Assembly (NCBI RefSeq): GCF_052425735.1
Contig: NC_135765.1
Span: 2,542,001 to 2,606,000 of the forward strand
Direction: 5' to 3'
Origin: Oculina patagonica
Taxonomy: Eukaryota
DNA length: 64,000 nucleotides
The notes below the pieces were generated by a model that did no database searches, was not told the origin of the DNA, and saw nothing but the letters and a program-made list of their open reading frames with translations. Positions 12,201 to 55,830 of this stretch are shown here, piece after piece; position 1 is the first letter of the stretch; every line of letters starts with the position of its first letter. The position numbers and the translations under genes are program-made.

Positions 12201-13438
12201 GGTACTCCCACACACCCTTCTCCCACTCCCCTCCGGAGAAGGAGAGAGTGGAGGGGGAGGTACTCCCACACACCCTTCTCCCACTCCCCTCCGGAGAAGG
12301 AGAGAGTGGAGGGGGAGGTACTCCCACACACCCTTCTCCCACTCCCCTCCGGAGAAGGAGAGAGTGGAGGGGGAGGTACTCCCACACACCCTTCTCCCAC
12401 TCCCCTCCGGAGAAGGAGAGAGTGGAGGGGGAGGTACTCCCACACACCCTTCTCCCACTCCCCTCCGGAGAAGGAGAGAGTGGAGGGGGAGGTACTCCCA
12501 CACACCCTTCTCCCACTCCCCTCCGGAGAAGGAGAGAGTGGAGGGGGAGGTACTCCCACACACCCTTCTCCCACTCCCCTCCGGAGAAGGAGAGAGTGGA
12601 GGGGGAGGTACTCCCACACACCCTTCTCCCACTCCCCTCCGGAGAAGGAGAGAGTGGAGGGGGAGGTACTCCCACACACCCTTCTCCCACTCCCCTCCGG
12701 AGAAGGAGAGAGTGGAGGGGGAGGTACTCCCACACACCCTTCTCCCACTCCCCTCCGGAGAAGGAGAGAGTGGAGGGGGAGGTACTCCCACACACCCTTC
12801 TCCCACTCCCCTCCGGAGAAGGAGAGAGTGGAGGGGGAGGTACTCCCACACACCCTTCTCCCACTCCCCTCCGGAGAAGGAGAGAGTGGAGGGGGAGGTA
12901 CTCCCACACACCCTTCTCCCACTCCCCTCCGGAGAAGGAGAGAGTGGAGGGGGAGGTACTCCCACACACCCTTCTCCCACTCCCCTCCGGAGAAGGAGAG
13001 AGTGGAGGGGGAGGTACTCCCACACACCCTTCTCCCACTCCCCTCCGGAGAAGGAGAGAGTGGAGGGGGAGGTACTCCCACACACCCTTCTCCCACTCCC
13101 CTCCGGAGAAGGAGAGAGTGGAGGGGGAGGTACTCCCACACACCCTTCTCCCACTCCCCTCCGGAGAAGGAGAGAGTGGAGGGGGAGGTACTCCCACACA
13201 CCCTTCTCCCACTCCCCTCCGGAGAAGGAGAGAGTGGAGGGGGAGGTACTCCCACACACCCTTCTCCCACTCCCCTCCGGAGAAGGAGAGAGTGGAGGGG
13301 GAGGTACTCCCACACACCCTTCTCCCACTCCCCTCCGGAGAAGGAGAGAGTGGAGGGGGAGGTACTCCCACACACCCTTCTCCCACTCCCCTCCGGAGAA
13401 GGAGAGAGTGGAGGGGGAGGTACTCCCACACACCCTTC
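9243..13438. repeat. 58-bp tandem minisatellite, about 72 near-identical copies
   Basis: Unit TACTCCCACACACCCTTCTCCCACTCCCCTCCGGAGAAGGAGAGAGTGGAGGGGGAGG; only a few single-base indel variants near 9710, 9875 and 9990. Confidence 0.98.
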
Positions 13439-27635: not shown

Positions 27636-30600
27636 TTAAGACGAACCTAGCAAGTTTTCTAAGGGTCCGGGGAAAGGGTAACCAAATATTTCAAAACTGC
27701 TCTGATATACGTCCCCTAGACGTTGAATCCAAGACTTTGGAATCTGTGAATAATACTGTACAAGTTCATCTTGAGTTTTTGATGGACGAAATGCTGGAAA
27801 TTTCAGTTCAGTTAAGTTGGCCCGCTCAAGAACATACCCAGCGTCATCTACCATCGTTTCATAATGTCCAACATAGTCATACTTGATATCGCAAAACCCG
27901 CAAACGTCAAGATAATTTGCCCAGTGCCAATCATCTTTATCACCCTCGTTTAGTATATACTCTACGAACTCTGGCCACTTTACCCCGTAACCGCTCTGTA
28001 TTGCCTCTTGTGAAGCGTTGGGTCTAAAGTTTTGAATGATCTTTCTCCCAAACACTGTGATAAATGGATCTTTATCAACCGATCTCGGATGCACGTATTT
28101 ATCTTTGTACGCCGACAAAAGCCTTTCAAAAGGTTCTCGCACAAACATAAACTTGTAGAAAGTTTCCAGCATTTTCTGTCCTTTCTCCGGTGGAAATTGT
28201 TTCACAGTAGGTCCATACGGAGAATAACCCTGATAGGTGCGATATCTTCCCAAGAGGGGCATCCACTGTCGGCTTGCCACCTTTGGTACGAGGCAAAATA
28301 TCAGTTTGTATTTCTCAAACACGTAAAGGTGCCCCAAAGTCTCATTACTTGGTTCTTGACGCTTTCTTTTTCCACAGTAATGTCTCAGGCGTTGCTTTTG
28401 TTCAAAGTCCCTTTTGCCATCCTCTCCTTTGTAATTTGTCATCTCGTCTCCCTTCAAAATGAGAATTAAAAGGTAAAGTCTGTGTCAAGCCTAGTGGCCC
28501 ATCTTGCTGGAACTTATTCCGGTTTTCGTAGCATGAAGCTACTAGGAGTATTTCTACCCCCTCCCCTTGATGAGATGCTAGTCCATCGTAGGGTTACACC
28601 GGTATTAGTTCGCCGGTACCCATTTATACACCTGGGTAAAGAGAGGCAATATGAAACTGATAATTTAAAAAAAAATTGAATGGTTTCTAAAAATCTGACG
28701 CAGGGCTTTTTCTCACTGAAAAGCTCCGGCGACTAAGTTTTGATTCCACTCTGTTCCTGGATCTCCGAGCTGCGTTCATTTGTTTCTTCACTTCTAAAGT
28801 AATTAACGGCTACGATTGGCTATTAACTAATACAGTACGGAGGAACAGCTTTGTATTTTAAAATCAAATCCCACCTCATCTTCATAAGGGTTGTCATCCT
28901 GCAGAACGGGAGTTGACAAGGGCTCCACTGAAAAGAAATGTCAGAAATGAATAATCATTTTACGAGCGCAATCGGGACAGGCCAAGGGGAGAGAGGCTCC
29001 TTTCAGTACCCAGGGGCTGGCAGCCTGATAACACTTCTATATTAGCTATACGGGTAGGTCCATTCCAAAGAACATGTTTTTTAGGCGCAGTAAGCTGAGG
29101 TAACATATTTCTCCGTTTTCGTATGGGGAGTTTAATTACAGTGGAACTGTATATTATCATTTATCTAATTTCCTTATTTTTTTTACACTGACTGTACAGT
29201 ACGGATATTGTCCCTCAAAACATACAGCGTACTGAGTGGAAGCCAACCATCTGGATTGAATGACTAATTAAAACTTGAGCTCAGAATTATAAGCTACAGA
29301 CGCTGTCATGTATTGGGCTAAGAGAGATAAAATACCAAGAATCTCGTACCATCACAACTTACCTACGGTGTCCTGTAGTAAGAAGCGACTAAGAGTACCA
29401 CTCCCCCACGGATAGGAGTCTTGTCCATCAACAGGATACCATAGCAACCTACATGAGCCCATTGATACACCTGTATAGTGGAAATACGACCCTGATAACT
29501 GAAGGTTTGAAACCCTCGACCTCTGCTCCAGCTCTTAAGGCCTGTTCCAAACGTCATGCTACTGCCGTGCCGAACTAAATTGAAGAAACCATTCAGTTTG
29601 GCAGGCTGAATTAGTTCGGCACGTCTACTTAGCACGGCAGGCATTCACCCTTGCCGTGCCGCACGGCAGGAGCGCGACTTGATTTCAAAAGGCGTGCTCT
29701 TGTCGTGCCGAGTTAAATTAAAAAACTATGTTAATGTGTTTTAAGTTCTTTTGCAGTTTTTTGTTGTTTCTGATAATATTATAGTTTGAATTTGCGCGAC
29801 TTCATTTTGTAGATTCGCCGTTTAACACCAATGCCGTGCTATCGTCGTGTCACTGCTGCAGTAGCACGACGTTTGGACTAGGCCTAAGTCTTTAAGACTT
29901 CTGAGACTTAACGGGCAGGGAAGCTCACAGGAAATATATAATACTGTTATTTATTTCCTGTGAGCTTGCCTGCCCGTTAGTCGCCTGCTTTATAACAGCA
30001 TGCTAAATCCTGGCCTAAAGGCCCGACCAAACGCACGCAACATTTCAACGCAACATATCCCAACATTGTTACGTACAGCATGTTGCAATCGTTTGGCCAC
30101 CTAGTCCAGTCCGTGAACTCTCTCTTCCACCCGCCCTTTAAAGGGGTTGAACCCAGGCGCGCGAAGAGAGAGTCCAGGATAACTTGCATGCGCATGCTCA
30201 GCACGAACCAATCAGAAGCGAGGAGTGTGGCGTCACTTGCTTGGGATGCGCGCGCTAGGTTAAAACTGGCTCGCTCAAATGACGAATTTAACTACGTAAC
30301 CGAGCGCGCGAATAAATGCAAGAAAAAAACTGTGCTCAATTGCATACAAAACCAATTCAATAAACAGCTACAAAATACTAGGAATAGTTGACGGATAGCG
30401 ATTTTTGTTTTGGCCGTTAGCTTTTAGCAGACACTGCCTGCAAAGCTAGGCTTTTTAAAGTTATTCCGGTGATCCTGCTTTAGTACACGGTCGTGTAGCT
30501 GAACTCGTCATCTGTGCGCGCGCGTTTTCAAAAGGGCTGCCAAATATGGTTTTTCCCCCAATTTTGGGGAAAAAACTGGCGCATGCGCATGCAAGTTATC

Positions 30601-33494: not shown

Positions 33495-35400
33495 GGGGGT
33501 GGGGGGTGAATAGGGGTACGCAAATCCGCCGAACCGTGTAGTTTTTTGGGCCAAATCCGTCAATCCGCCACCGTTCTCGTTCAAGTCCAAATCCACATTA
33601 CATCAAAACTTTGTGTGGTATAGTTTTCGCTGCTACGGAAAGTAGATGTTGCTTCACATGCAAACTGTTTCAGAAGTTTCGTTTTACTGCTTTTTTTTGC
33701 GACAATTACACCAACATACCGACGAAAACCGACCAAAGTGATCCGGACTCCGTTAAGTATCTGTTGCAGGTCTAATTGGTTTTCAGATTAAATCTCTTTT
33801 TCAATCGATTTCAACCAAGGTATTAAAATCTGTTTCAAGCTAAAAAAATAATAGTCTTAAAATAACATAAAACAATTTGCATTTGCTCATTAGGGTTTTT
33901 TGTGTCGAAATTGTTTTTTTATATATAAAACGAATGTCATTTGGCTATGAACAAAAGCGAAATACAAGTACAATTTGTCTGTTTTATTTATTTATTTTTA
34001 TTTACAATTCATAAATTGCCCAGAATTCGATTTTTGTAAAAGATATTTGCCGTCGGATTCCCATACAAACACTGTAATTTCTACCCGCTTTGCCTACTCG
34101 TCAAGATGGCGTCGAAAACCGTGATAAGGCCTATTCAGTTAGTTTCCGACCATGACAACGGCGGTTGTCTTACAAAAATTCAAAAATGTTCATATCATAT
34201 AGTTTATAAAATAGAAATAGATGAATGTTTTCTTTCTCTTCTCCTCTTTTCTATGTCAGTGTTATCATTACATGTATAAGATTCTGGCAACGCAAGTCAT
34301 GTTTGATTATTATACCGGACATTCTTTTAACTGTTGAGCGAACAAATGGCACAGGTTTAAGAGTAATTGTGATTCCCAGATTAGAGACCTCCTGAAGAAA
34401 ATAACAACCCAACTGGCTTTAAAAGAAGCGAGCTACAGACCGACGTAGCTGTACTTCTGCATCTGTGTATGTGGCGTCTGAAGGAGAGCGTTTTTCACAA
34501 CTGTGAAAAAAAAAAACTACTGCCAAATTCAAGAGGATCGGAAAAACACGGCCCCACAAGCTTCTCTGAGCTTTACAAAGACAACCATGTTTAAGTAAAG
34601 GTTAGGTAAGGTGATGTTAGAGAAAATTTCACTATCAACCACCTAGAGTAAAACTGCAAACGACACCTAATAAATTCCTTTTAAAATAAAAATTGCGCAT
34701 CGGTTTTCGCATTTTACACGATTCGCGTTACTGAACAGTTGGGTCGGTCCTTATATGTCACGTTAAGGCCGTGCAAAGAAACAAATTTGAAAACTAACTT
34801 TGGGATTTAAACTGATCTTACCTGATTTTTCTCTGGCAATGATACAGCATTCTGGCGTACAGCGTACTATCTTGAGGACGGTTATTTAAATCAAGTGATA
34901 GTGGGGGATATGCTAAAATTGGTTCTTTCTAATACTTAGTGATAACATCTCGAATTAGGTTATTGGCTGCCCAGGGGTTCGGTTAGCAGCTCTCCCAAGG
35001 TCTCACATGAATGGCTCGTTCCTTTCGAGAGAACAATAGAACAAACAACAGGAACAATGCCCCTAGCCTCAAAAATTAACAATAGGAACTCCTACATACA
35101 CTAGAGGACCAGTAAAATAAAGCTTCCGAGATCTGGATGCAACACCACGTTTCATTGCTTGTTTTTTTCGACAACTCGCCAACATACCGCCGAAGACCGA
35201 CAAGAGTGATTCGAACTTCGTTTATCCACGATCCGAACTTCCTGACATAAAGAGATCGGGATCCGGGCAAAAATTCTCAGCTTACCCGCGATCCGCTGTA
35301 CTTTCGAGATCCGCTAATCCGCTCAATGCATCGCAAAAAATCCACAATCCGTGCGCTTTTCAGCGCCAAATCCGACGATCCGCGATGCTTTTCACCCCCT
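33495..35400. mobile_element. Degenerate non-autonomous element with ATCCG-rich ends
   Basis: GGGGGTGAA...TTCACCCCC termini, clustered (A/G)ATCCG motifs at both ends, and internal direct repeat CCAACATACCG(A/C)CGAA(A/G)ACCGAC at ~33711 and ~35179. Confidence 0.45.
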
Positions 35401-35687
35401 TCGTTACGCACAACAGAGTTACCTTTTGTCTCATCACGCAATCTTAACCCCACATTGAGAAGTAAATTTTCGTTTGGATATTGCCAAAAGCGGCTTCTCC
35501 TCGCGTTATTCTTTACCTTACGGCTACACATGCCATTTCTAACGGCTACATTTCCAGTAAAACAGTTGCTGTTTTTTTTTCTAATGGCGATGCATTAACT
35601 TCTGAACAGAAACAAAAACTTTAAGGGAACTGGTCAAAACTATTTTACATGCTCGGGACCCACTTTTGAGGGGTGGTGGTAAGGACG

Positions 35688-36020
35688 AGGCCATGGGTCT
35701 CCAAGCCCAGGTGGGGGGATAGGGGAGAGACCATGGGTCTCCCAACCTGGTGGGGGGATAGGTGAGAGACCATGGGTCTCCAAGCCCAGGTGGGGGGATA
35801 GGTGAGAGACCATGGGTCTCCCAACCTGGTGGGGGGATAGGTGAGAGACCATGGGTCTCCCAACCTGGTGGGGGGATAGGTGAGAGACAGCTAACCCGGT
35901 GGGGGGGGGGGGATAGGTGGGAGACCATGGGTCTCTGTAGGGGGGATAGGTGACAGCGGGAGGTTGTTGGGGGGAGGGGGGCTAGGTAAGAGACCATGGG
36001 TCTCCCAGGATAGGTGAGAG
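35688..36020. repeat. Left subterminal ~39-40-bp minisatellite
   Basis: GAGACCATGGGTCTC cores at 35727, 35766, 35806, 35845, 35921 and 35990 separated by G-rich spacers. Confidence 0.9.
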
Positions 36021-37280
36021 GTGATAAGTAGAATGCAGTTGACCATGTGGTAAAGTAAAAAACAAGGACTTTTAGTCTCAAATATCAAAAATCCACAAAC
36101 TTTACAGGAACATGTCAATATTGCGCCATATTACGGGTATGTTTAATATATGTAGTTAGAGATAATCAATCTGTGTGATCTGGGAACAGAAATTGTTGAA
36201 ACCAGAACAGGTAATTGTTTATCAGTCCAGGTCAGATCAGAGACAACTCTTGTATGGCATATAATGCCTTCTGTCTCCTTCTTAGAGGTTAAATGGGATG
36301 TTTGTTACGGAATTCTGCTGCACAAGATGACTGCAGGCACAAAAATCAAGAAATTCGTTATATTCCATGTTTGTGCCTGCACTCAAATATACTTTTTTTT
36401 ACTCGTCGGATTCTCTCCACTCTATAAACCTCTTTCAGTACCAAAAGGTGACTTTAATAAATGCCATTTATTCCAATAACATTGTTTACTGTGCCTAACT
36501 TATATCCATGCAGGGAAGGATCAAATACCAGAAACATGTGCACATGTCCTTACTTCCTATTTAATTTAAGCCAGCAAATCAAATGTACATGTGTCTTTAT
36601 TTGGAAGGAACAAATGAAGCACAACTAAGTCTTTCTGTTGGATAAAAAATATCAACTTTGTTTACAGAGTTTGTTTTGTTTGATGAATATATCAGTTTCA
36701 ATAGAGTTTTTATTTTTATTTTTTGATGAAGTTATTATTGAAAAACTATACAAGAGCGACAAGTAATAATTTCTACAAGTTATATACATATCAAAGCAAC
36801 ATAGAAATTAAGGAAGGTGGCTACTTAGACCAAGAAAACCAAACCGTCTTTAAAAAATGAAAATTATTTTATGTCTGTGTGGCCCCGATTATAGTAGTTG
36901 CACTGTAAGCCATATACAAAAATACTAGAACATGGAAAGTTTAGGTCAATGGCAAAAAATACTGTTGCCAAGTCACAAGGCTATTTATCACATAAGGTGG
37001 CTCCATATAGTTTCATTACTATGTTTGCTGCTAATGCAAGCTTGTCCTATTGCAAGCTCAGGCAAATTTGATCAACAACCCATTAATGTATAACACTTCA
37101 AAGAAAGGCTTTACCCAAAACAGTTTTTTAGAGCAGATAATACTGGTCTTACTTCCAAAGATTGTAAGTTTCATGTTATAAACAAGTGTGAAATATTAAT
37201 GAAACACGAGCATGCACAGCACCATAACACATTACAACACAGCCACGGTTAAAATGTGTTGTTCAGAAATGGGCAAACCG

Positions 37281-38446
37281 CTAGTCTTTTGACACCGAAG
37301 GCTTGGTCATTTCCTTGTCGGCAAGCTTCGGGTTTGCTCCAAAGAAGTCGTTGAGATGTGTTCTACAAGCTTTGAAATGAGCGTTTAATGTTGTTTTGAC
37401 TTTCTGTCCCAGCTTGTATTTGCCACGGTTGCTTAGTTTACCAAAATAATTCTCCAGGTTTATAACTATTTGAAGCCATGTTTATAAATATAATAGCAGG
37501 AATGTGACAGTAATCTGATTGCCCTAGACTTGACCCTCCTGTGAGGGTTACCCTACCTCGAGCTTTTACATGAATAAAAAAATAGTTGACTCTAGAAGGG
37601 TAACCCTAGCAAGCAAATAGGGTTACCTGCCTCCTAGGGTAACCCTACCTTGCATGTAAACAAAACTGGGAAAAACAGCAAATGGTAATCCTCATAAACG
37701 GGTAACCCTCTAAAAGGGTTACCCTTCCTCCATGTAAACAGGCCATTAAAGTAGCTTGCATAAAAAAACAAGCCAGCCATCTGTGACCCTAGTTGCCATA
37801 GCAATGAGATTGAGGTACTAAAAGAGTATTCATCCTGAAAATTGAACAAAGCTATAGCAAATTTATTCTGACTAGACATTGTATATTTTCACCCAGAATT
37901 AACCTTTTGCAAATATAATTACACTACTATTAAAAAGATTACTTTTTTGGCGTGCCGGTTAGTCGGATTTTAAAAAATAACTAAATTTGCATATTAATTA
38001 ATTGGCCTACTAATATTTATTAGTTGACCCCATCGTTCTTCATCCTGTTCATCTTCAATTTTTTCATCTAACTCAACTGCATCACTGCCACCAGCACTTG
38101 CACATTCAACACCAACACCAGAAACCTTTTCAGTAGTGTTCTCATCATTTTCAACAGCACCAGTGCCCTTGTTCCCTGCACAGTCCCCAGCAATCTGATC
38201 TTTTTCATCATCACAACCACCAACATTAGCACTTACATTGACAGCATCAGTAACCTGATCACAACCATTACCACCATCACCACCAGCAACCTCACAACCT
38301 ACACCATCGGCAACCTCATTTCCAGGACTACTGTCAATAGCCTTATCATCGCCTTCTTCTTCAAACCAAGGAGTGTCATGTTCTGCACTGCTTCCAGTGT
38401 CATCTACTTCAACATCACCAGAATCCAGTCCATCTTTTAAATGATC
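37281..38446 (-). pseudogene. Candidate exons of a second, minus-strand cargo gene (acidic exon and basic exon)
   Basis: Stop-free frame 37994-38446 after an AG acceptor, encoding D/E/G-rich sequence (DHLKDGLDSGDVEVDD...), and a stop-free frame 37281-37465 (NLENYFGKLSNRGKYKLGQKVKTTLNAHFKAC...); no start found. Confidence 0.35.
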
Positions 38447-39935
38447 CTTTAGAGCAAAAAGTTAAACCACATATAAGTATATTTTGAGACACAATACTTC
38501 TACTACCGCCACCATTAACACTACCACTTCTGCTTTCGGATTTTAGATTCATTTTAAGCACTAAATGCTTTCAATAGGTTTTTTAGTCATATAAATGCAC
38601 ATGTACCTTTAATGTCATAAGGTTTGGCCTTTCCAAAATAAGACAAACACTTACCAGTTTACATACAATTATAGACCCTTCAAAACTACTACCAAAGACC
38701 ACAACTCAGATTTTTTACTACCCCTACCCCATGACAATGAAAACCATCAAAAGCAAGACCTTAAGCAACATTTATTGCATGTTAAGACCTTGAATTTGTG
38801 TCATATCCTAATCCAGTTAGACTGCTTTCAGTCAATCAGTATTAAATCATGATAGTAGAGTCAGATGTAGTTAATTTGAAAGAGATAATTCTCAAGGGTA
38901 ACATAGGACAACAGACAAACGAAGCTAATGAGGTCTATATTTTAAATACCAACAGTATTTTTTTAATGATTAAAATAAAAATATATCAATTATCCGTGCA
39001 TATTTTCATGCCAAATGGAGGCTATTGTTTAGATTTAACCCACCGATTAATTTTCGGGCACACTCCTTGGACAAAATGCATCACATTGTACAAAATCGTA
39101 GAAATGTATCAGACAATATACCCTGTCCGATTTGATATATGCGGTCCAGTTTTTTAGACAAATGCAAAACAAAAGAACAAATTTGCCTTTTTATTTTTAA
39201 TTTTTTAATTAAATCACAGTGTTAAAAATGTTTTGTGCATTAATCAACTTGCATTTATTTCAACTGCAGTTACACAGTTAGCCTTGATTATCACTGCAGG
39301 TTTTTCCTATTTAATGGTGATAAAGACCGTTGTAGAAATTAATCAGAGGGTTATAAAATTAATAAAACCCTTTGCTGGTATATTGAGAAAAAAACACTTC
39401 CGTGGGGGATGTATGGATAATTTTTGTAACTACACATTGGAGCAGAAATATTGTCCTCAAAATTTTTCAGTTGTCCTTGAAGGACCTGAAGGTTTGCTTC
39501 TCTTCTAAGACTTCTAACTGTTCATTTTTCAGACAATCTTTAAGCCTCAGGCATTATCCTCCAATATACCAGCCGCCTGACGGGGTTTATTTACTTATAA
39601 ATAGCACAAGTAAAACACAGAACTCTGACAAATTAGCTTCAGTAAATACTTATGCTTGACAGGTAAGATTAGCAAGTGGAATAAAACGAAAAATATTTTT
39701 TATATAAGCTTAAGTCTTATACAGGACTTCGTGTGTGCAGTGCTGCCTACTTTATAAAACAAAAATAGTACATGCTTCTGAGTTAAGATATCAACGCTTA
39801 AGCACGAAAATAAGTGTTTCTTAAAAAAAAATAATTAATATTTTAAAAAATACCTTTATGTGCGTTCTGTGATGGCTTTTGAAACGTGTTAAATACGCCA
39901 ACTTCACGAAAACTTTTCCAGTGTGGTTAAACACA

Positions 39936-41436
39936 ATGTCAATCGCGCCGACAATCGCGCCTAAACTATGCTTGTACAACCGCTGTTCGAAGTGTTCGCG
40001 GTGGACTGTTTGGTGGACGGACACCAAACAGTCTCCTGACAACCCGGAGTGCTCTTGCGAGGGGGTCAACTGTTTGGAGGTGTTTCCATTCTTTTCTTCA
40101 ATCCCTTCTTTAAATCTCTTAAAGTTCCATTCAAATTCAGGTAGAACCCCACCTTAAGTTTTGTTCTTGTGAGAAAACAACAGAAGTCAAAGGTTGCGTG
40201 ATATAACCAAGCATGGATTTTAATTCTCCCTCCCTTTCCATCTCCTTAGCCTTTCACCCCCACCTGTCCCTCCCTTTCTACTCTCATTCAATTTAATGTT
40301 TGTTTACATTTCCTAACCAATTCAGTATCGTACTAATCTGTGCCAAGCAATCAGATAATAACAGAAATTTCCCTTAATTTTGATCTCCCATACCAAGACC
40401 TTAGAGTATAAACCGCTAATAAAACAAAACACACTTGATATTTGCAAAGACTCCTTTGACGTTCTATCAACAACCACTGTCCCATCTTCTAGAGGCTGAT
40501 GTTCAAGCATTTTGTAAAGCGAGCAAAGTGGAAAAGGAGACATCTCAAAGATTTCATTGGATTCGTCTTAATCTGAAATGGTATGACGACCATGGACAAA
40601 TGTCACCGAGTGGATATTATGAAGAAAGACGAGCCTGTGGTGATGCAAATTGTTGCGGGACAAGAATATTGCCCCTTGGCACCCCACAGACTCCGAAACC
40701 ATCTCTTTCCCACGTAGGGCATTATGAAGAGCTAAGGGTCGTGGACAATCTGGTAGAAGATCCATTGTCAGAGGAGAAATTGAAGGGGTTGAATTTATTC
40801 CCAGAAATTGAAGTCAACAAAGAAACGTACGAACAGATGGACTATTTCTTGCCCTCGAAAGGACTTGACACTGTCTATTCGCACAGACATGGTCTCAATG
40901 AAGACGACGAAATCAACTTTAGAAAGGTGTTTCCCTGTCCTCAGAACAGTTTAAGGGAAGAAGTAAGGAAGCGCCTGGAAAAAGAGAAGATAAAAGAAAG
41001 AGAGAAGTTACCAATTCCTTTAACGGAGCGAATTTCGTCCGATAAACTTCACGGCGAAAAAACAAGAAGGCTGACAGAAACGCTCAGAGAAATCTGCAAC
41101 TGCTCTGATCCTGACTGCCAATGGAGAGTGACTGGTGTAAAATACGACCTTGTGTCCCGCATTATGGAATATGCAAATAAAGAGAAGATAACCGTGGGAA
41201 AAGAAATCCAAAGAATGGAGCGCAGTGCTTTGGAGCGAGAGCTAAGAGACCTGCATGGACTACCAACAAGTGGGGCAGTGCTTGACGTGAGAGAGCGACT
41301 TGCGAGGGCACGCAAAAAAAAGTGGCTTCCACCACAACCGTGTGAGATTACCAAGGAGAAGAAACAAGGCAACGCAGTGCTAACCGAAGACTTTCTTTTC
41401 ATCTCTTCAGTCATCAATAGCATCACAGATTCGTAG
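39936..41436 (+). CDS. Two-exon ~382-aa Cys-rich protein with two SAP-like motifs (element cargo)
   Basis: Exon 1 39936-40140 (ATG...TCAG|GT; CSKC, CSCEGVNC) joins in phase 1 to exon 2 40493-41436 (TTCTAG|AG); SAP-like LTETLREI...VTGVKYDLVSRIMEY and LERELRDLHGLPTSGAVLDVRERL. Confidence 0.65.
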
Positions 41437-41607
41437 TAGCAAGAAACATTATTTATTTCTCGCCTGCTTTTAGATTAACCTTAGCGTGACATGTCATACC
41501 ACTAGACTCTTCGTGTCCTCACCCGACTGAAGGAAGTGTCGACAAAAAAAAAATGAATGAGGGGTCGTAAGAAAGAGAAAATGTGTGTAAAGTAGATGTT
41601 GTGTGCA

Positions 41608-41990
41608 GCCCGGAATCGAGGGCGGTTCCTGAATGCGTATTAACGCCAGGTGAATCGCTCGATGAACTGTGATGGGCTAGTAATTTGTCTGTTCCTCTGT
41701 TCAGTAATGTGTATGTCATCTTGTTGAATGTAACCCGGAATCGAGGGCGGTTCCTGAATGCGTATTAACGCCAGGTGAATCGCTCGATGAACTGTGATGG
41801 GCTAGTAATTTGTCTGGTTCTCTGTTCAGTAATGTGTATGTCATCTTGTTGAATGTAGCCCAGAATCGAGGGCGGTTCCTGAATGCGTATTAACGCCAGG
41901 TGAATCGCTCGATGAACTGTGATGGACTACTAGTATTAAATTTGTTTGTTCCTCTGTTCAGTAATGTGTATGTCGTCTTGTTGAGTGTGG
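41608..41990. repeat. 125-bp tandem repeat, about 3 copies
   Basis: GAATCGAGGGCGGTTCCTGAATGCGTATTAACGCCAGGTGAATCGCTCGATGAACTGTGATGG recurring at ~41613, 41738 and 41863. Confidence 0.92.
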
Positions 41991-42408
41991 CCAAAAAATG
42001 ATACATCATAAAAGGAAACGGTGCCTTGATCAGTATGTAACTTTTTGTAATAGCAGAATTCTTCACTTAAGTTGAATGAAAAAATCGAAGTTGTAACAGA
42101 CTTCCAGCTGATAGATGTGGAGAAATCGATTAGTTTATTAAAGACAACTGCCAGTGTTATGAATGAAAACAGTAATTTTATGACATTATAAAACGAAAAC
42201 AAGCTTAGCACCAAGGGTGCGACTCTGCAGAGACTCTGCGCCCAACGAGTCATTTCCGTTGAACAATCATTAAACAGCCAAAATGAACAACCGGGTGCTT
42301 AAGAGGGGACTGGGCACTAGTAGTTTCAATGCCATTTTTCTCAAAATCCACACGAAGACCCAACCTCAAAATTTCAGACCTTTCAAATTGGCTCTGATTA
42401 AACATTTA

Positions 42409-42790
42409 GGGGGGGGGGGTTACAGAAGAGACCATGGGTCTACTGGGAAGAGACCATGGGTCTATTGGGGAGGGGGGGGGTGGTACAGAAGAGACCATGG
42501 GTCTATTGGGGAGGGGGGTGGTACAGAAGAGACCATGGGTCTATTGGGGAGGGGGGGTGGTACAGAAGAGACCATGGTTCTATTGGGGAGGGGGGAGGGT
42601 TACAGAAGAGACCATGGGTCTATTTGGGGAGGGGGGTGGTACAGAAGAGACCATGGGTCTATTTGGGGAGGAGGGGGGATACAGAAGAGACCATGGGTCT
42701 ATTGGGGAGGGGGAGGGGTAAAGAAGAGATCACGGGGCTCTAAATTTTGGGGGGTGGGGGGCAAAAGCAGATACCATGGGACTCTTCAAG
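42409..42790. repeat. Right subterminal ~38-41-bp minisatellite
   Basis: GAAGAGACCATGG cores near 42428, 42450, 42491, 42529, 42568, 42608, 42647 and 42687 with G-rich spacers. Confidence 0.9.
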
Positions 42791-44566
42791 GGGGTGGGGG
42801 GCTATATGGGTAGGCAGTCACCTCCACTTATTCTGGTGGGTCCTGAGCTTGTATAGTAGTTTTGACCACTTTCCTAAGCGTTTACTGCTTCCACCGGAAG
42901 TAATTTCACAACAGGCTACAAAATCACTTGTAAATATCACTTCACACCTGCATTGAATGATGTTGCAATTCTAAATTGTGCAACTCAGCAGAAATAATCA
43001 ATTGTCACGAAATGAGTTCCCTTTGTTTAACTATTAGCAACGTTTTAGTGTGTGAAAGACTTGTACCAGTACAAATTTGCGTTCTAAACTTCGTTGCCTT
43101 CGAGCGCTGAACCCCTCACATTCTCAATTGGTTATGTAATGTACCAATTGGGCTACTCACGTTTCAAAATTGTTATATAACGTTTATAAAATTGACAAGT
43201 CACGTTTTTTCTACGACATCGCACGTGTTGACGCACTACCACCGTGTGACGCTTAGAACATCCACAGACAAATCCCTTGAGAAATTATAATATTCCCTTG
43301 AGAAATTAAAACAGTCCCTTGAGAGTTAACAAAACTGTGCGGAATTCGGTCCTAGAGTGACAAGCTTCCCTCCAATATCTTTACCATTTTACTTGTAGAC
43401 AAGCAAAATACTCGATAAAAATGAAATAAAACAAGGTCTACTGGCCAAAGGAAATGAACCAAATCCCTTGAAACGTCATTTTAGTATATGTTTACTATAC
43501 ACAGCTGTGACTGCACAAATACAGCAGTTGTTTCTTTTCATTGGGTACTGTATAGCAATCTCAACTTGATTTTCATACTGTTTTCTCACTTTATTGGACT
43601 ATAGTTTTCCAATGATTGAGTTAGGATGTACCATTGTAACAACAAAAACTTTTCAGTTCTCAAGAAAATAAGAACCTATTTAATATAAAATCCCTGTAAA
43701 CACAATTAATAAAAAAACCTGTTTAGGCTAACTTGGAAAAATGCAGGTTCTTATATGCGGGTTTTTACTGTATAGCATAACCAGAACAGGAGCTAGAATT
43801 GTTTGCTTCCCTGAATAAGATGCTGGCGCATCTCAAGTATCCCCTAGAATACAGTCAGGATTCCCAAGCAAATCACCTGCTCTTAGCCACCATCTCTAGC
43901 AAAATGACAACAAAAAGCATTTCATACCAATTTGGGTTTCGCACCAAAGTGAATCAAGTATAAGCCCTGCATGTCAGCTTTTCTACTGTCAAATGTATAT
44001 ACCAAATAGAAGAAACGTTGATCCTGTGAAAAGCATAAAGCATGAACGATAAGACCGAATGGGATTCTGGGTAGACAACATTAGTAAGCTTAGTAATACT
44101 TCCATTTATTTATAACCAAGATATTTTCTTTCTTTGAGAGCTTTAAAAGCATGATTTATGCAACCTGTCTTATTATAATGTTCATTCTGTCAAAGACGAC
44201 AGTATTTTTTTTTCCAATTTCCCAGTAAACATTTGGGTCGCATCGTTTATGGTTTATGCTTTTCATGGGTCAACGTTTCTTCAATCAGACAAAACAACAC
44301 AGCACAACATTTTTCATTTTTATTCATAAACCGAATACTGTAGATCTTACCTAAGAATTTTAATGAATTAAACTGCAATCTCAAGCTGCAGTAACTTTTG
44401 ACATTGTCTACAACAGCACTGCACAAATGGTACAGCGCCCAATCTTTACAAAATTAAAGTAAAACAAATCGAATCTATAATTGCAACAAAACAGCGTTAG
44501 CCGTTGAATTTCCCAAATGCATTTGTTCTTTAGCAAGCTCCATGTCAGATACATTTTCAAGTATCC

Positions 44567-48500: not shown

Positions 48501-51500
48501 TGATGAGATGACATATTTTTTTTCTGTGTTTGAAAGTACAGTCAACTCTCGCCTTGTAGAAATCTCGCTATTACGGACACCCCGTTATTACGGAGAGGAG
48601 TTGCAGTCCCGGCGAATAAGAATTACTGAAAATAACTTTCGGTACTTCGGACATCCTATATTACGGACACCAAATTGTGGTTCCGAAGGTTTTCGTTATA
48701 GAGGGAGTTGACTATAATAGGACTTTAAACGATTCAACGAGTACAGGTTTAGCAATCATTTTCAACCTAAAAGCGAGGAAATCAGATTAAGATCTTTAAC
48801 TCGCCCCGGACCTTCCTGCCAGCAGATTGGTTGAGTTGTCAAGTGACATTTTATGTATGCCCACCTCATAAGTCCATCTCTCTTGAGTATTAAACAGCAT
48901 TAACAGACACATCTGGTAAGAGGATACTTGAAATATGTGTCGTCGTGTTTCTGTGGGACCACCCTCCTGAAAAGAAATTAGTAAATCATGGTTATAGCAA
49001 ACTTCGTTTTTGACAAATCCTTGGAGAAGTCGCTAATGAATGTTAAAATTAGAATCACTTAAGANNNNNNNNNNNNNNNNNNNNNNNNNNNNNNNNNNNN
49101 NNNNNNNNNNNNNNNNNNNNNNNNNNNNNNNNNNNNNNNNNNNNNNNNNNNNNNNNNNNNNNNNNNNNNNNNNNNNNNNNNNNNNNNNNNNNNACTTTCT
49201 TGGAAGGTGGAAAGGTCGCATTCAGCTCCGCTGTTCCCTATAAACAACAAACAAATCTCTAAATCATTTCACAACAGAAATAGAACAGGGACAAAGAACA
49301 AGACGTTAAGCAAACCACTAAGTAACTGCTGTTTGTTTAACCTGAGCACAAATCTATCAAACTGAAAAACTGTCCTTACTAGTTGTGGTTGAAGAGTCAG
49401 CTGTCTTCCACTGTGACAACCTAAATAGAACCTAGAAAAAAGGTAAAACTTAGATGAATAAAGAGATATAAACTTTACTGTAGAAAGTAATTTACGTTTT
49501 CGTTGGTTGCATTAGCATGCTTAGTGATTGGTTTACAAAACTCGCGCCACTTTCTCATCCAAACAGAGGTTATGCTAAAACCAATCGTGACTTGCTCGTG
49601 CACGTTTGCCGCACTTCGCTGTGGTTACATGTGGTTTTTCAAGGTACTGTCACACTGGGAAATGTTTAGTGCAACTTTTCCATTTTGTTTTGCTGTTGCA
49701 AGACAATTTACAGGAAAAGTTGCTTAGTGTAACGCCAGTTTGGCAACCAAAAAAAAAATGATGGAACATTCTGCAGTTGTAACAAAAAGTTGAACTTGAA
49801 TTTTTTTGTACAATGCTTCCTACTGGCAACAAAAACGTCAAGAGACGTGTCGAGTTTAGTGGGTGTTACACAAATACGGTTTCTATTGCAACTTGTGCCA
49901 CAACAAAACGGTGAGACAACATCAAACAAGGCTTGTTTGGTTATTCCTTGACTGTACTGAACAATCCATATAATTTTTACCTTTTAAAGCAGTCAAAAGC
50001 GTGCTGGGCCTGGGGAGGAACAGTGCACTTTGGCGAGGCGGCCTGGGTTGGCCAGAACCCAGTTGTGAGAACTCGAACTACCAGATCCACTCCCATCAGA
50101 TTTATCTGTAAATGTCACATAAGATTGTCCAATCGACATGCAAAACAACTTTATTTTCATAACTGAACACGAGTGATGCATAACCATCAGATGCAGCGTA
50201 AAGACCAGGGTTATGCTCCAGGAGAAAAACCCCTTGTACAGTACACACAAGGGAGCATTTTCAAGTTTGCTCAATTTGCCCTGGGATCTTTCTCCAAAAC
50301 ATTTAACCAGTTTAATATCATGGAGCATTTTGCGGGGTGGAAATTCTGCTCCTAAGGATGAATTTTACCTGTAAAATCATTGGTACACACAGAGAAGCTT
50401 TGCTCCAGTAGTGTGCCCCTGCGGCATAACCCGGTAGCAAAACCCTTCATGTCTATCAGCCTTAATTAAGCCAGTTAAATATTTGGGAGCAAGATCCTAG
50501 GGCAAACTGACCAAATTTAAAAATGATTCTTCGTGTGTATAGGCCTTAATCCAATACAGGAATGATCTAACTCAAAAGTTGTTTTCAAGCTACACTGTAC
50601 CTGTAATCTTAATACACCTAAATTAGGTATTTACTTCAGAAATCTCCTAAGTGGCAATTTTTGTCTCTTTATTATTCTGTTTACCTGATTATTGGAGATG
50701 TGTTGTCTAAATTCATCATTTGTTGATTGTGATAATGACATGTCTTTGAACATGCCTTCTAGTTTGGATGTAAATTGACATCCACACTCAGTCTGAAAAG
50801 CGAAAAACATGCAAGGTACATGAATTATGCAGCTGATAGCAAACCAATACAAACCACTCTAGAAGTTGTACAAATAATTAAATGCAGTTAAATGCAATTT
50901 AACAGAGTTAACAACAAAGAGCGCCAGTGTTGTTTGGAGTCAGCGGTGTTTCATACATGGGCATGCGCCAGATCCCATGTGCTCTTCGACTGAAGTGTGC
51001 TTTGAGCGTTTGCGGACGTAAGCGTGTTTATTAGCGTGGCAGTTCATGGGACCTCATCTTCAAGGCTTCCCCCCTTGTCCTTATCTTGAGTAGCGTGTGC
51101 ATTATTTGTTTTTTCGTCCGTCGTTTCGAATCTTGCGGTTGTTTCTTTCGTTTGTATGGCACTTCGTTCAAAGCGTACAACAAACAACAGTGCAGCCGCC
51201 ATGTTGGATTCAAGTCAGCCTTCTTCCTCAGCCGATCCTCCCTCTTCCGTCGCAAGTCCTCCCATTAATTCAACTCCGGTGAGCGCTCCACCCTCCTTCG
51301 TTCTCTCTCAACAGGACCTCAGTCAAGCTTTTTCACAAGCCCTGGGGGATTCGTTACCGCGCATTCTGGCGGCGTTGCAAAGCCACACATCGAGTTCTTC
51401 GGCGGCGGGAAACGCGACATCGGGCACAACATCGCCCGTCACAATGTCATCTGGTTCTGCTGTCATTAACCAGCCCAGTCCTCAGGTAATTTGGTCGTTC

Positions 51501-54500
51501 CTCCATTTATTTCAACATATTGCACACTAGGCAACTCTTCTTTGTCTTCGCCATCCTTGTTTGGTTCTCGTGGTGCCGCGAATGGACCGCCATCTTCGAG
51601 CCAGTTTTTTACGCCATTGTCCTCCTTTGGTTCTAATTCCTCAATTGCGTCTACCTCAACATCCCTGAATAGCCCATTTGTTGTTGGCCCCGGTTATTTT
51701 CCTATCCCTGAGAAGCTGGTGACGAAAATTAGGTCTGGCCAATTTGTTGATCTTGCCGACTTGCTGGCTGAAAACTTAAAAGCCCAGGACACAGAGCCCC
51801 CAATGTACTTTGATGGCAAACTTCTCGTGAGTTCTTCTAAGAAAAGGGTGCAAGAGATCACTGATATCATGACATGGGTTGAGGCATTCACCATGTATTC
51901 GTGGATTTTATGTTGCGCTCATCCTTCCAGGTGGCAGGACATGACACAATACAAGCTACTAATTCTTAAGACATCGCGCCAGTTCCCTGGGAAGGCCTGG
52001 CTCCACTACGATATTGCATTCCGCAAGGACGCAGCTGCAGCAGGTTTGGTGGATTGGTCTCGTATGAATCTGGATTTATACAACTTCCATACTCTTGCGT
52101 CACCTCTTCCTCAGTCTAGCCAGCAGCCAACCACTTCATCTCCAGCTTCAACGTCGATAGCCAGTTCGTCCACCTTTTGCCGATCTTGGAATGATGGCAC
52201 CTGTCGCTGGACCTTTGGTCAATGCCGGTACCGACATCGCTGTGAGAAATGTGAAGGTGATCATCCACGCGTCAATTGTCCCTTTCGGGCCTCAACCTCT
52301 CTTTACCGGCGCTCCCAGTCAACTCCCCCATCCCAAAGCAAACGTCAGCGGCGTTGAAGTGGGACCCAAACCATCTGTAAATAGTGTACATTCTTTTCGT
52401 TCAGTTTCCTCTTCAAATTGTTTGATTCCTATTCCTGTTAATGTTGTTGTTCATGCACCACAAGATGCTTTTGGTAGTGGCATGCCCTCCGCAATGGCAC
52501 CCCATACTTTCCCCTCTCGCTCCTTTTCCACGTTGGGCACCTCGCAGCAAGACCTCGTCCCCCCATCTAGAGTAACACCCATAGACGCGGAAAAACTTCG
52601 ACATGAACTGTGTTCTTACCCCGACCAATCGCAAGTGGATTATGTAATTGCAGGCCTCACAAATGGTTTTCATCTTGGTTTTGATCCTCTGGCTATATCT
52701 TTAAAATCGGAAAATAAAAATATGCCTTCAGCATCCCTTCAGCCGTCCGTCATCGACCAGTATCTCCTCACGGAACTCGACAAAGGCCGTGTAGCTGGCC
52801 CCTTCGCTATAGCCCCTATCCCAAACCTCCACGTGAGTCGCTTTGGAATTATCCCAAAGAAGTACCAGCCTGGAAAATGGCGGCTTATCTTGGATTTGTC
52901 TAGTCCTTTAGGCCATAGTGTCAATGACGGCATTCCCAAAGAACCCCCTTTTCAGTGCAGTACATGAAGGTTGATGATGTCATCAGCGGGATCATGCTTC
53001 ACGGTAGAGGAACACTGATGGCAAAGTTCGATGTGGAAAGTGCTTATCGCAATGTCCCTGTCCATTCTGATGATCGTTACCTGCTTGGTATGAAGTGGCG
53101 CGAAAAATATTTTATTGATATGGCGCTTCCATTTGGACTACGCTCCGCTCCATTCATCTTCTCCTCCATTGCAGATATGCTCGAGTGGATCCTGAAACAC
53201 AATTACAATGTGAATTTTCTATTACACTACCTGGATGACTTCCATACGTTGGGCCCTCCTAATTCACCTGTCTGCCAGAACAATATTGATACTTGTGTTA
53301 AGCTATTTAAAAAGTGGGGAATCCCTCTTCACCCGAACAAACTGGAGGGGCCATCCACTTGTTTAACGGTGCTCGGTATTGAGCTTGATTCTCTTGCACT
53401 TCAGGCCCGTCTGCCACGTGATAAGTTTGATCGTATTGCTGCTCTTCTTGAATCCTGGTCCCTCAAACAACATTGCACTAGGAAGGAGCTGGAATCTCTC
53501 ATTGGCAATCTTCAACACGCATGCAAAGTAGTTCCTCAGGGGCGTACCTTCTTGCGGCGCATGATTAATTTATTGTCAGCCTTCCGACGTGATGACCACC
53601 CGATTAGGCTCAACCAAGACTTTCGCTTAGACCTTCGTTGGTGGCGAGAATTTTTCCATTCTTGGGATGGTCTCAGTTTCCTGCTCTCCCCACAGTGGGC
53701 GACCTTACCTGATTTTTCCGTTTCCTCAGATGCTGCTGGTGCCAAGGGTTATGGTGCAATCTTTGATCATGAATGGTTCGTGGGTGAATGGTCAGCTGCT
53801 CAGCATCCCTTGGCAATTGCGTACAAAGAGCTGTTTCCCGTGGTTATTGCAGCTTCCTTATGGGGCCACCGATGGGCTTCAAAACGAGTTGAGTTCTGCT
53901 CCGACAACATGGCGGTCGTTAGTGTCTTGCGTTCAGGCACCACGAAGGATCCGAACATGATGGTTCTTCTCCGTCACCTATCACTTGTGGCAGCCCGACA
54001 TTCCTTTGCCTTTACTGCCTCTCATACACCGGGTAAAGACAACTCCATTGCTGATGCCTTATCTCGTTTTGACTTTCAGCGTTTCCATCATCTTGCTCCT
54101 CACGCAGCTCCTGGGGCAACTCCAATTCCTTCAACGCTGCTAGCTCAGCTGCCCGTACTTTGACAGACAAATGCCAGTTCTACTTGACCAATGGCCTCAC
54201 CTTCTACTCGCCAAGTTTATGCTTCTGCTCAACGTCAATTCTTAGAATTTTGTAGTCAGGATACTCCCATCGAGCCAAGTCAGCCCATTTTACCAGCCAG
54301 TGAACAAACTCTGATGCGCTTCTGTACTCATTTAGCAGATCGTCTTCACCATTCTTCCATTAAAGTATATTTGTCTGCAGTCCGTTCTTTACATATTGAC
54401 TATGGCTTCTCGGACCCAATGGTCAATCGTCTTCAACTTCAGCGTCTCCTTCGGGGGATCAAACGACACAAGGGCTCAAATCTCCCTCAGCGCCAGCCAG

Positions 54501-55830
54501 TGACAGCTGACCTTATGTCTGTTTTGCACAAGTCTTTAGATTTTACTAACCCTGACAATGTCATGCTATGGGCAGCCTGCTGTCTCGGCTTCTTTGGGTT
54601 TCTTAGAGCTGGAGAATTTACAACAAATGGTACCTTTGATCCAACTGTGCACCTGACAGCAGCAGATCTTCAAGTAGACTCCTCCACAAATCCCCAAAGC
54701 TTTAGAGTGTTGATCAAGTGCTCAAAGACTGACCCTTTCAGGCAGGGTTGTTTCATCTATCTTGGCCGTGGTTCCTTGCCTCTCTGTCCTGTGACTGCAT
54801 TAACAAACTACCTTCATCTTCGCGGGCCAGGCACCGGACCTCTCTTTATTCACCAAGATGGCTCTCCTCTTTCTCGATCGCGGCTTTCCTCGTTTCTTCA
54901 AACCACTCTACAGGCAGCAGGAATTCCTGGAAAGTTTTCAGGGCATAGCTTTAGAATTGGAGCCGCAACAACTGCTGCGCAGAGAGGTGTTCCTGACCAT
55001 CTCATTAAGACAATGGGTCGCTGGTCGAGTGATGCTTACCTGTTATATGGGCGCACGCCTGTGGAAACCATCCTTTCAGTAGCTGAAAGACTTGCCTAAC
55101 AGGTATGGTGTTTCACTTATCACTTATTTGCCGGTTACTGGGTGCCTCCGGATTTGGGCAGTTTTTCTCGGGTCTCTGGCTCTCCCATCCATGAGCCCCT
55201 CTTTCTCCGAGCTTGCTAGCGCGCTGCTCGGAGGTCCTCCGGCTTGGCGTGGGGGCTCATGGCTGGCTTGCCAGGATTTGCCAGCCATGGGAGCAGTCTC
55301 CATCTAGGAGCTGGCTGCCAATAGTGGAAGCTCCTGGATGCCGCAGGCACCCAACCTCCATTTTGCGATGCAGTTGTTAAATGCAGTTAAATGCAATTTA
55401 ACAGAGTTAACAACAAAGAGCGCCAGTGTTGTTTGGAGTCAGCGGTGTTTCATACATGGGCATGCGCCAGATCCCATGTGCTCTTCGACTGAAGTGTGCT
55501 TTGAGCGTTTGCGGACGTAAGCGTGTTTATTAGCGTGGCAGTTCATGGGACCTCATCTTCAAGGCTTCCCCCCCCCCTCTTCCCTCCCTCTTTCCACTGT
55601 TCGTGCAGTGTGACGGGTGCCTGCCCTCCCTACTGCGTGGGGGCTCATGGCTGGCTTGCCAGGATTTGCCAGCCATGGGAGCAGTCTCCATCTAGGAGCT
55701 GGCTGCCAATAGTGGAAGCTCCTGGATGCCGCAGGCACCCAACCTCCATTTTGCGATGCAGTTGTTAATGTCATTTACAGGGTCGCCTTTGCTTAAATTT
55801 TGACATGATAATAATAATAATAATAATAAT

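Follow-up and report, generated by a model that had tools for sequence, protein, structure and literature searches.

We describe an insertion of 7250 bp (7.25 kb) in the genome of the reef-building coral Oculina patagonica. It occupies positions 35625-42874 of the stretch analyzed here (the window), which comprises 64,000 nucleotides of contig NC_135765.1, and it is bounded by terminal inverted repeats (TIRs) and a 3-bp target-site duplication (TSD) of TAA. We think it likely that this segment is a single non-autonomous cut-and-paste transposon of the Pack-TIR type, sitting inside a TAA of a high-copy repeat, and that its interior was built by template-switch repair. All coordinates are positions in the 64-kb window, the element in the window is referred to as the C8 copy, and the genome searched was 529 Mb in size.

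Boundaries of the insertion

The two TIRs are 39 nt each and lie at 35625-35663 (+ strand) and 42836-42874. By our own count they match at 33 of 39 positions in inverted orientation, and the left one is kept at ten ends in the genome. A TAA stands immediately outside both ends (35622-35624 and 42875-42877). The left TAA closes a flank (35590-35624) belonging to the high-copy host repeat that served as the insertion target, and the same host repeat resumes from 42878, directly after the right TAA of the TSD. Within the 64-kb window, a 12-nt core of the TIR occurs in two places only, i.e. at both ends of the element. A 30-nt degenerate TIR pattern, searched with up to three mismatches, gave eight matches in the 529-Mb genome and none in a reversed-pattern control. 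A piggyBac/TTAA reading of the ends was considered and rejected, as the right flank is not TTAA and the duplication measures 3 bp.

Data from other individuals were taken from Logan contigs of four runs, representing four coded organisms, in which the region was recovered at ~99-100% identity. These data are read with caution, and contig depths are poor measures. In run X1, the right flank (42850-43449) has a depth of ~100,000-200,000 versus ~55 for single-copy sequence, which places the element within a high-copy repeat.

The repetitive nature of the target allowed the insertion site to be compared with empty counterparts. In a genome search, the left-flank motif TTCTGAACAG had to be followed, at a distance of 5-25 nt, by GTTTACTGC from the right flank; this returned 206 matches, with none in the control. 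The modal spacer between these motifs is 17 nt long and reads ...CTTTTAGC, the modal form being ...CTTTTAGCG.... In the window, the spacer consists of 15 nt, the 7250 nt of the element and another 5 nt (17 + 3 + element), and it reads ...CTTTAA up to the left boundary and TAAGCG... from the right one. Deleting exactly 35625-42874 plus one TAA gives back 17 nt, ...CTTTAAGC. This deletion brings back the modal spacing of 206 paralogous empty sites, which proves that all of the sequence from one TIR to the other entered as one insertion and that 3 bp, TAA, were duplicated at the target. The element is thus a single, precise, TIR-bounded insertion.

The insertion target has features of its own. 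It is itself high-copy (35590-35624 and 42878-43449), with at least 206 copies that have both flank motifs and a depth ~2000-4000 times that of single-copy sequence, and it falls into two or more subfamilies, one with a 17-nt and one with a 14-nt spacer. In run X2, a loose end joins the left-flank letters directly to 42879 onward. We considered it as an allelic empty site and rejected it, as its letters are those of a common subfamily of the flanking repeat; it is a paralogous empty site only.

Terminal sequences and their family

About ten such termini exist genome-wide, of which eight were found by the pattern and two more by BLAST. They are the pair in the window, single ends on contigs C9, C7, C12, C2, C4 and C5, and two ends on C11. 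Their outer flanks are mutually unrelated, and at seven of the ten the flank is TAA or TTA. The ends sort by their subterminal sequence into five of L-type, which lead into a palindrome array, and five of R-type, which have ~50 nt of other sequence in common inside the TIR. The L-type end of the window (35625-36133, + strand) consists of the TIR, 23 nt, and a minisatellite (35687-36004) with seven copies of GAGACCATGGGTCTC; it is common to the ends on C9, C12, C2 and C4, reaching out to ~36133 in the case of C4. The R-type end (42751-42874, - strand) includes the right TIR, and the ~50 nt inside that TIR are matched by the ends on C11 (both), C7 and C5. Family-level similarity extends to ~36133 on the left and begins at ~42751 on the right.

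Minisatellites with a period of ~39 bp lie just inside both ends, at 35687-36004 and 42425-42736. They are built around the perfect 15-bp palindrome GAGACCATGGGTCTC, which, with up to two mismatches, is present in seven copies on the left and nine on the right, versus 0.08 copies expected by chance in the window. The nine right copies fall within 42425-42790 (+ strand), again at ~39-bp spacing. The + strand is the G-rich one in both arrays; their orientation is thus direct, in contrast to that of the TIRs. Exact palindrome arrays were found nowhere else in the genome beyond the C8 and C9 copies. The arrays may plausibly serve as binding sites for a trans-acting DNA-binding partner of a transposase, of the kind that PIF/Harbinger transposases require.

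A first-pass annotation of this stretch, made by a model from the letters alone, had proposed a 7.25-kb element at 35625-42874 with imperfect 39-bp TIRs, TAA on both flanks and minisatellites inside both ends, and all of this was borne out. It had also called for other copies of the ends and for an empty site. Copies of the ends do exist with unrelated flanks, mostly TAA or TTA, and paralogous empty sites are numerous; a second paired copy did not come to light, and neither did an allelic empty site.

Each of the eight solo ends was without a partner TIR, both within 10 kb and at any plausible distance along its contig. The element in the window is thus the sole paired member of a family that is small and mostly decayed. 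The prevalence of solo ends raises the thought that the window, too, holds two unrelated solo ends that merely bracket resident DNA, eight of the ten ends being solo in just this manner. We hold this to be highly improbable. It is contradicted by the modal 17-nt spacing of 206 copies that reappears upon removal of 35625-42874 and one TAA, and, given eight other ends in 529 Mb, we estimate the chance of an inverted R-type end falling within 7 kb of an L-type end at ~2 in 10,000.

A transposase was not found near the solo ends, where the large ORFs (open reading frames) are all host-like (serpin, LIM and fibrinogen). One of them is an uninterrupted serpin ORF of 400 codons (E 9e-126; L063:7502-8701, G000:C2) that lies ~1 kb inside the solo L-type end at L063:9708, whether by coincidence or as another carried gene.

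Absence of a transposase and superfamily assignment

Nine ORFs of at least 60 aa were scanned against Pfam, followed by 56 stop-to-stop pieces of at least 40 aa from the parts of the element outside ORFs and arrays. None of these frames matched a transposase, Myb, SANT or MADF family. Three Pfam matches were obtained among the 56 pieces, with E values of 0.003-0.04, which is the chance level for such a scan. A DDE_Tnp_4 transposase is missing from the element, as expected for a non-autonomous member, and no open frame gave a Pfam match that would mark a second ORF with a Myb/SANT or MADF domain. The element is non-autonomous. On this point the first-pass annotation, which had seen neither a transposase nor a Myb/MADF protein, was right; the "divergent coding remnants" that it reported gained no support beyond the three chance-level matches.

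Transposase loci of the PIF/Harbinger superfamily are abundant in this genome. At least 150 were counted (scored of 518 DDE_Tnp_4 candidates), many of them with open frames of more than 400 codons. We searched for an autonomous relative that shares the TIRs, as the first-pass annotation had recommended, and found none: no end of the family lies within ~150 kb of the 150 scored loci. Given this outcome, the element is probably immobile at present.

A 3-bp TAA/TTA duplication combined with TIRs that start with G is the pattern of PIF/Harbinger (PIF/Tourist) elements (PMC2836001, PMC8903248), whose transposases need a DNA-binding partner protein (PMC2836001). The TIR length of 39 nt also falls within the short-TIR range of the superfamily (about 14-50 bp). 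From the TSD and the G-starting TIR, we consider membership in PIF/Harbinger fairly probable, as the first-pass annotation had proposed; the TSD is a feature of that superfamily but not exclusive to it. Zator elements likewise generate 3-bp TSDs (PMC10045372), and the Zator-1 element of amphioxus, in which the TIRs measure 33 bp and the TSD is TAA or TTA, borders a composite that carries a gene (PMC12905397). Our 3-bp TSD and short TIRs would suit a Zator element as well, so that the same data accommodate both superfamilies. We regard the Zator assignment as somewhat unlikely, in view of the many PIF/Harbinger transposase loci with long open frames in this genome and of the TWA duplication with G-starting TIR, which is the classic PIF/Tourist pattern (PMC2836001, PMC8903248). 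The choice concerns classification only and leaves the structure of the element unaffected. For an undescribed subgroup, which the first-pass annotation suggested, there is no foundation as long as a transposase is missing, and TIR elements with gene fragments are already described.

Mosaic interior

Transposon sequence proper amounts to ~510 bp at the left end and ~125 bp at the right end; the 6.6 kb between is host-derived. The largest part is a 3.9-kb block (36134-40001, + strand) without family-level homology. It is common only to a one-ended copy on contig C9, where the whole of 35622-40001 recurs at 98.5% identity (G000:C9:8619091-8623536), with 63 differences. An old dispersed repeat of ~560 bp is embedded in the block at 39036-39595 (70-72% identity to many copies), and 37389-37748 is 77-78% like three loci on C4. 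Conserved coding sequence was not found in 36134-40001. Of the open frames in the left part, the longest is at 37997-38461 (- strand); a search of 5.8 billion proteins gave it no relative except a "hypothetical protein [Oculina patagonica]" of its own genome.

The C9 copy has another flank (...CAGATAA) and adjoins a run of N. Beyond the equivalent of 40001, C9 passes into unrelated, mostly unique DNA, and no right end is present there within 15 kb. The run of N (L058:1-273, G000:C9:8618800-8619072) stops 18 bp before the left TIR of the C9 copy, which leaves a readable flank of only 18 bp.

The block is followed by an 8-nt filler (40002-40009, + strand, direct reading), at which other copies of the adjoining repeat have different bases. 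Positions 40004-40009 add to a 6-bp stem that the repeat has by itself, giving a 12-bp hairpin in which 40004-40015 pairs with 40022-40033; judged from the letters, a filler that extends a hairpin in this manner would be a snap-back signature. The adjoining repeat is represented by 431 bp (40010-40440, + strand) from the interior of a very young, very high-copy family, with 2917 candidates at first look. The fragment is 99-100% identical to hundreds of copies, which stay identical past both sides, and both edges in the window consequently fall inside the parent repeat. In run X1 this piece has a depth of ~200,000 versus ~55 for single-copy sequence. The parent (loci L003-L030) is a larger dispersed repeat whose copies are 99-100% identical well past the 431 bp, and it is very young and apparently very active.

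To the right of the 431-bp piece lies a fragment of a coral gene (40438-41436, discussed below), and its 3' flank (41437-42261, + strand) is unique in the genome and contains a 125-bp unit repeated three times in tandem (41609-41988). The flank gives way to 145 bp (42262-42406, + strand) from inside one arm of a miniature inverted-repeat transposable element (MITE) of ~420 bp, 83-90% identical to copies of that family. One contig of run X1 crosses the junction at 42261/42262. The MITE family (L037, L039, L042, L043) consists of two inverted arms of ~146 bp around a spacer of ~120 bp and has dozens of copies at 81-90% identity. A scan of 34000-44500 against Rfam found nothing.

The interior is therefore a mosaic in which no piece is a complete nested transposon and in which the junctions are not those of transposon insertions. 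We also considered that a small element had later taken in whole transposons (a nested-insertion reading) and rejected this for the 431-bp and 145-bp pieces, each of which comes from the interior of its family's sequence.

The carried gene fragment

An open frame of 337 codons extends from 40423 to 41433; in 300 shuffles the mean was 114 codons and the longest frame had 210. From 40438 to 41436 (+ strand) it encodes, without internal stop, residues 353-684 and the stop codon of a conserved, uncharacterized coral protein of 684 aa. The carried ORF thus represents the C-terminal 332 residues, or the 3' 48% of the gene, at 94% identity to the homologue P0025, and it is 55-74% identical to uncharacterized proteins of other corals, including Porites lobata. 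Homology to the coral protein starts exactly at the edge of the 431-bp repeat fragment, and the GATA at 40437-40440 suits both sides of the junction. Among the homologues the N-terminal 352 residues are well conserved; searches of the window and of the genome did not find them. A protein search of the whole genome identified the carried ORF as the sole copy.

The ORF had been described in the first-pass annotation as an intact SAP-like gene. It is truncated, as stated above, and it matched no Pfam family, with no match to SAP at E <= 0.1. The best SAP (PF02037) match was in the homologue P0006, at 14 bits versus a cut-off of 23.9 (E = 0.041), which is sub-threshold. Of the cargo element envisaged in that annotation, what stands is a single large non-autonomous insertion with host DNA inside; the cargo itself is a mosaic of fragments rather than a gene accompanied by remnants.

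An AF2 model of the ORF product has a mean pLDDT of 50, i.e. low confidence, with a helix-loop-helix at 255-294. The ESM Atlas returned cnidarian clusters only, with scores of <0.9, and no relatives were found in a scan of metagenomes. The four differences among the near-identical ORF sequences in the runs are all amino-acid-changing, and the window ORF has ~15 residues unlike both close relatives, P0023 and P0025; these substitutions are weakly suggestive of relaxed constraint on the gene stump. There is no evidence for transcription of the stump in run X11, which is RNA only by guess and which covers the non-coding parts deeper than the ORF.

Evidence from other individuals

In runs X2 and X8, contigs with the ORF (~99.7% identity) extend to the left of 40437 by 241 and 3513 letters, respectively, that are unlike the window. 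Contigs over 39568-40001 in the same two runs extend by ~620 letters unlike the window, as does the C9 copy. At their listed C8/C9 differences, X2 and X8 carry the C9 letters, including at 39872, 39902 and 39931. At several of the other C8/C9 differences, individual runs show the window letter, so that many of the 63 would seem to be polymorphisms that segregate. Run X1 has both letter types at 39872-39931, and position 40437 is exactly where its ORF contig begins, which is what a branch point would give. The block 37450-38459 has the depth of one diploid locus in the runs. X2 and X8, which are labeled as other organisms, both contain the right end (about 42680-42856) and also, at full depth, a second copy of 40551-40768 with ~91% identity that is not in the assembly. 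We read these data as an indication that the C9 arrangement is older and widespread, that the left 4.4 kb of the window are a recent copy, and that the junction before the ORF is derived or polymorphic.

The different sequence upstream of the ORF in X2 and X8 also bears on how the gene came into the element. It is conceivable, though we lean against it, that the element already held the whole 684-aa gene, a relocated single-copy host gene, and that the reference allele arose through a later internal replacement that destroyed its 5' half, not through capture of a 3' piece taken from a parental locus. Such a history would agree with the fragment being the only copy in the genome, with no parental locus, and with the long upstream sequence attached to the same ORF (~99.7%) in X2 and X8. 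It would also agree with the depths in X2, where the ORF, the 3' flank and the right end are all at roughly half the depth of C9-type contigs, as if confined to one haplotype, and with the X1 contig that crosses the junction of gene flank and MITE at full depth. A precedent is known from amphioxus, in which a gene duplicate was mobilized between Zator-1 arms with a TAA TSD (PMC12905397). However, contig depths are poor measures, the upstream letters in X2 and X8 may be something other than codons for residues 1-352 and need not lead to a left TIR, and in these two runs the right end may lie in flanks of another kind. Furthermore, the second copy of 40551-40768 at ~91% could be the true host gene. 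If the element did hold the whole gene in the Oculina lineage, a cut-and-paste element would have moved a host gene instead of duplicating it, and template-switch repair that copied 3.9 kb from beside a paralogous lone end would have left the species, or this haplotype, with a transposon-borne stump only.

The same contigs must be weighed against an error of assembly, in which the left 4.4 kb would derive from an alternate haplotype of C9 and would have been misjoined to a real C8 element through the common left end and the 431-bp repeat. No listed contig of the four runs bridges 40001-40441, the window-type letters are missing from the listed contigs of all four runs at most C8/C9 differences (e.g. 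37858 and 37906), the 4.4-kb block has the depth of one diploid locus, and the C9 copy adjoins a run of N; each of these would fit a chimera. The lack of bridging also follows from the data type, because short-read contigs break at a high-copy piece. A join mediated by a repeat would not create a 431-bp piece cut at both edges within its parent together with an 8-nt filler that extends a hairpin. The start of the X1 contig exactly at 40437 fits a real branch, window-type letters are present in X1 at 39872-39931, and 431 bp is short for a long-read misjoin. We therefore judge a chimeric assembly to be quite unlikely.

Proposed mechanism

We return to the reading of 35625-42874 as one Pack-TIR-type transposon rebuilt by template-switch repair. 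A break or gap inside the element would have been repaired by copying the homologous left end on C9. Synthesis would have run beyond the ~510 bp of common end and into the DNA neighboring it on C9, for 3.9 kb. Run-on synthesis of this kind would explain why C9 has no right end and shows no junction where its similarity to the window stops. The nascent strand may then have folded back, giving the 8 nt of filler, and copied 431 nt of the dispersed repeat before rejoining at the 4-nt microhomology GATA (40437-40440) inside the gene. Gap-filling with serial template switching is, we infer, the most likely mechanism, by analogy with animal Pack-TIRs, for which gap filling, template switching and microhomology at most breakpoints have been described (PMC8277862).

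Several observations weigh against this reading. The TIRs of the window element differ at 6 of 39 positions. No transposase is tied to these TIRs, and Zator likewise yields TAA/TTA duplications (PMC12905397). Just one of the roughly ten ends has a partner, so that the full 7.25-kb unit is only putatively mobile; the sole recent second copy, on C9, is without cargo and without a right end. The mosaic rests on the assembly, as no listed contig or read bridges 40001/40010 or 40440/41, and the microhomology at 40437-40440 was deduced from the starts of contigs and of protein homology rather than from parental sequence. Finally, capture of the Pack type should leave a copy of the parental gene, and this assembly has none.

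Other features of the window

Three further features lie outside the element. A 58-bp satellite occupies 9243-13438, with 72 copies that are 99% identical and a GC content of ~0.6. As a consequence of this GC-rich satellite, the stretch is open in all six frames, with ORFs of 1377-1436 codons. Adjacent ORFs at 51491-55099 (+ strand) match RVT_1 (E 3e-14) and the Phage_integrase tyrosine recombinase family (E 5e-9) and probably belong to a DIRS-like retroelement. An open frame of 273 aa at 27639-28457 (- strand) contains a full Sulfotransfer_2 domain (E 6e-44) and is probably an exon of a host gene.

Comparison with known systems

Pack-type elements have been much studied in plants and only sparsely in animals. 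In the literature we found no Pack-type element described for cnidarians. The Oculina element has the structure by which Pack-TIR and Pack-TYPE elements are recognized, namely TIRs and a TSD, no transposase, and an interior derived from host genes. A parental copy is missing from the genome, and X2 and X8 hint at another context for the gene in other individuals. Candidate breakpoint features are the 8-nt filler (40002-40009) and the common GATA (40437-40440).

The closest likeness is to the animal Pack-TIRs of Tan et al. 2021 (PMC8277862), which are also non-autonomous and single-copy and carry host gene sequence inside; the filler or microhomology at their junctions would have candidate counterparts here, and the origin proposed for them is likewise gap filling with template switching. 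The Oculina element differs from them in having no parental gene, in chaining several unrelated fragments, and in a 3.9-kb filler taken from beside a paralogous lone end. The main text of that study names neither Harbinger nor cnidarians. Pack-PIF/Pack-TYPE elements of maize and rice (PMC8903248) share the PIF-type ends, the TTA/TAA TSD, the captured coding DNA and the lack of a transposase, but these are plant elements, usually of <2 kb and often multicopy, whereas ours is an animal element of 7.25 kb and the only paired copy. Turmoil-1 of C. elegans (PMC2572040) is likewise an animal element of the Harbinger type with captured coding fragments, and it too exists as one complete copy plus several fragments; it has a transposase, however, and its captured fragments lie inside ITRs (inverted terminal repeats) of 760 bp, while the Oculina element has no transposase and an internal cargo.

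The composite of tesDwb flanked by Zator-1 in Branchiostoma belcheri (PMC12905397) is similar in its TIRs (33 versus 39 nt), its TAA/TTA TSD, the host gene between its ends and its polymorphism among individuals. It consists of two whole Zator-1 elements around a complete duplicate whose parent is kept, in contrast to the single ends, truncated gene and missing parent in Oculina. Tourist-like MITEs such as mPing (PMC2836001) are comparable in being non-autonomous, in their TAA/TTA TSD and G-starting TIR, and in relying on a transposase and an ORF1 protein supplied in trans. MITEs of this kind are high-copy and shorter than ~800 bp, and with 7250 bp and ~10 ends in 529 Mb the Oculina element is not one of them.

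We do not propose a new transposon class or mechanism, as TIR elements that carry gene fragments, including PIF-type ones, have already been described (PMC8903248, PMC8277862, PMC2572040). The case suggests that a conserved coral gene became truncated or structurally polymorphic in Oculina through the repair event. Beside the systems compared above, it adds a checkable example from a reef-building coral of a TIR transposon rebuilt from host DNA, with boundaries proven by paralogous empty sites.

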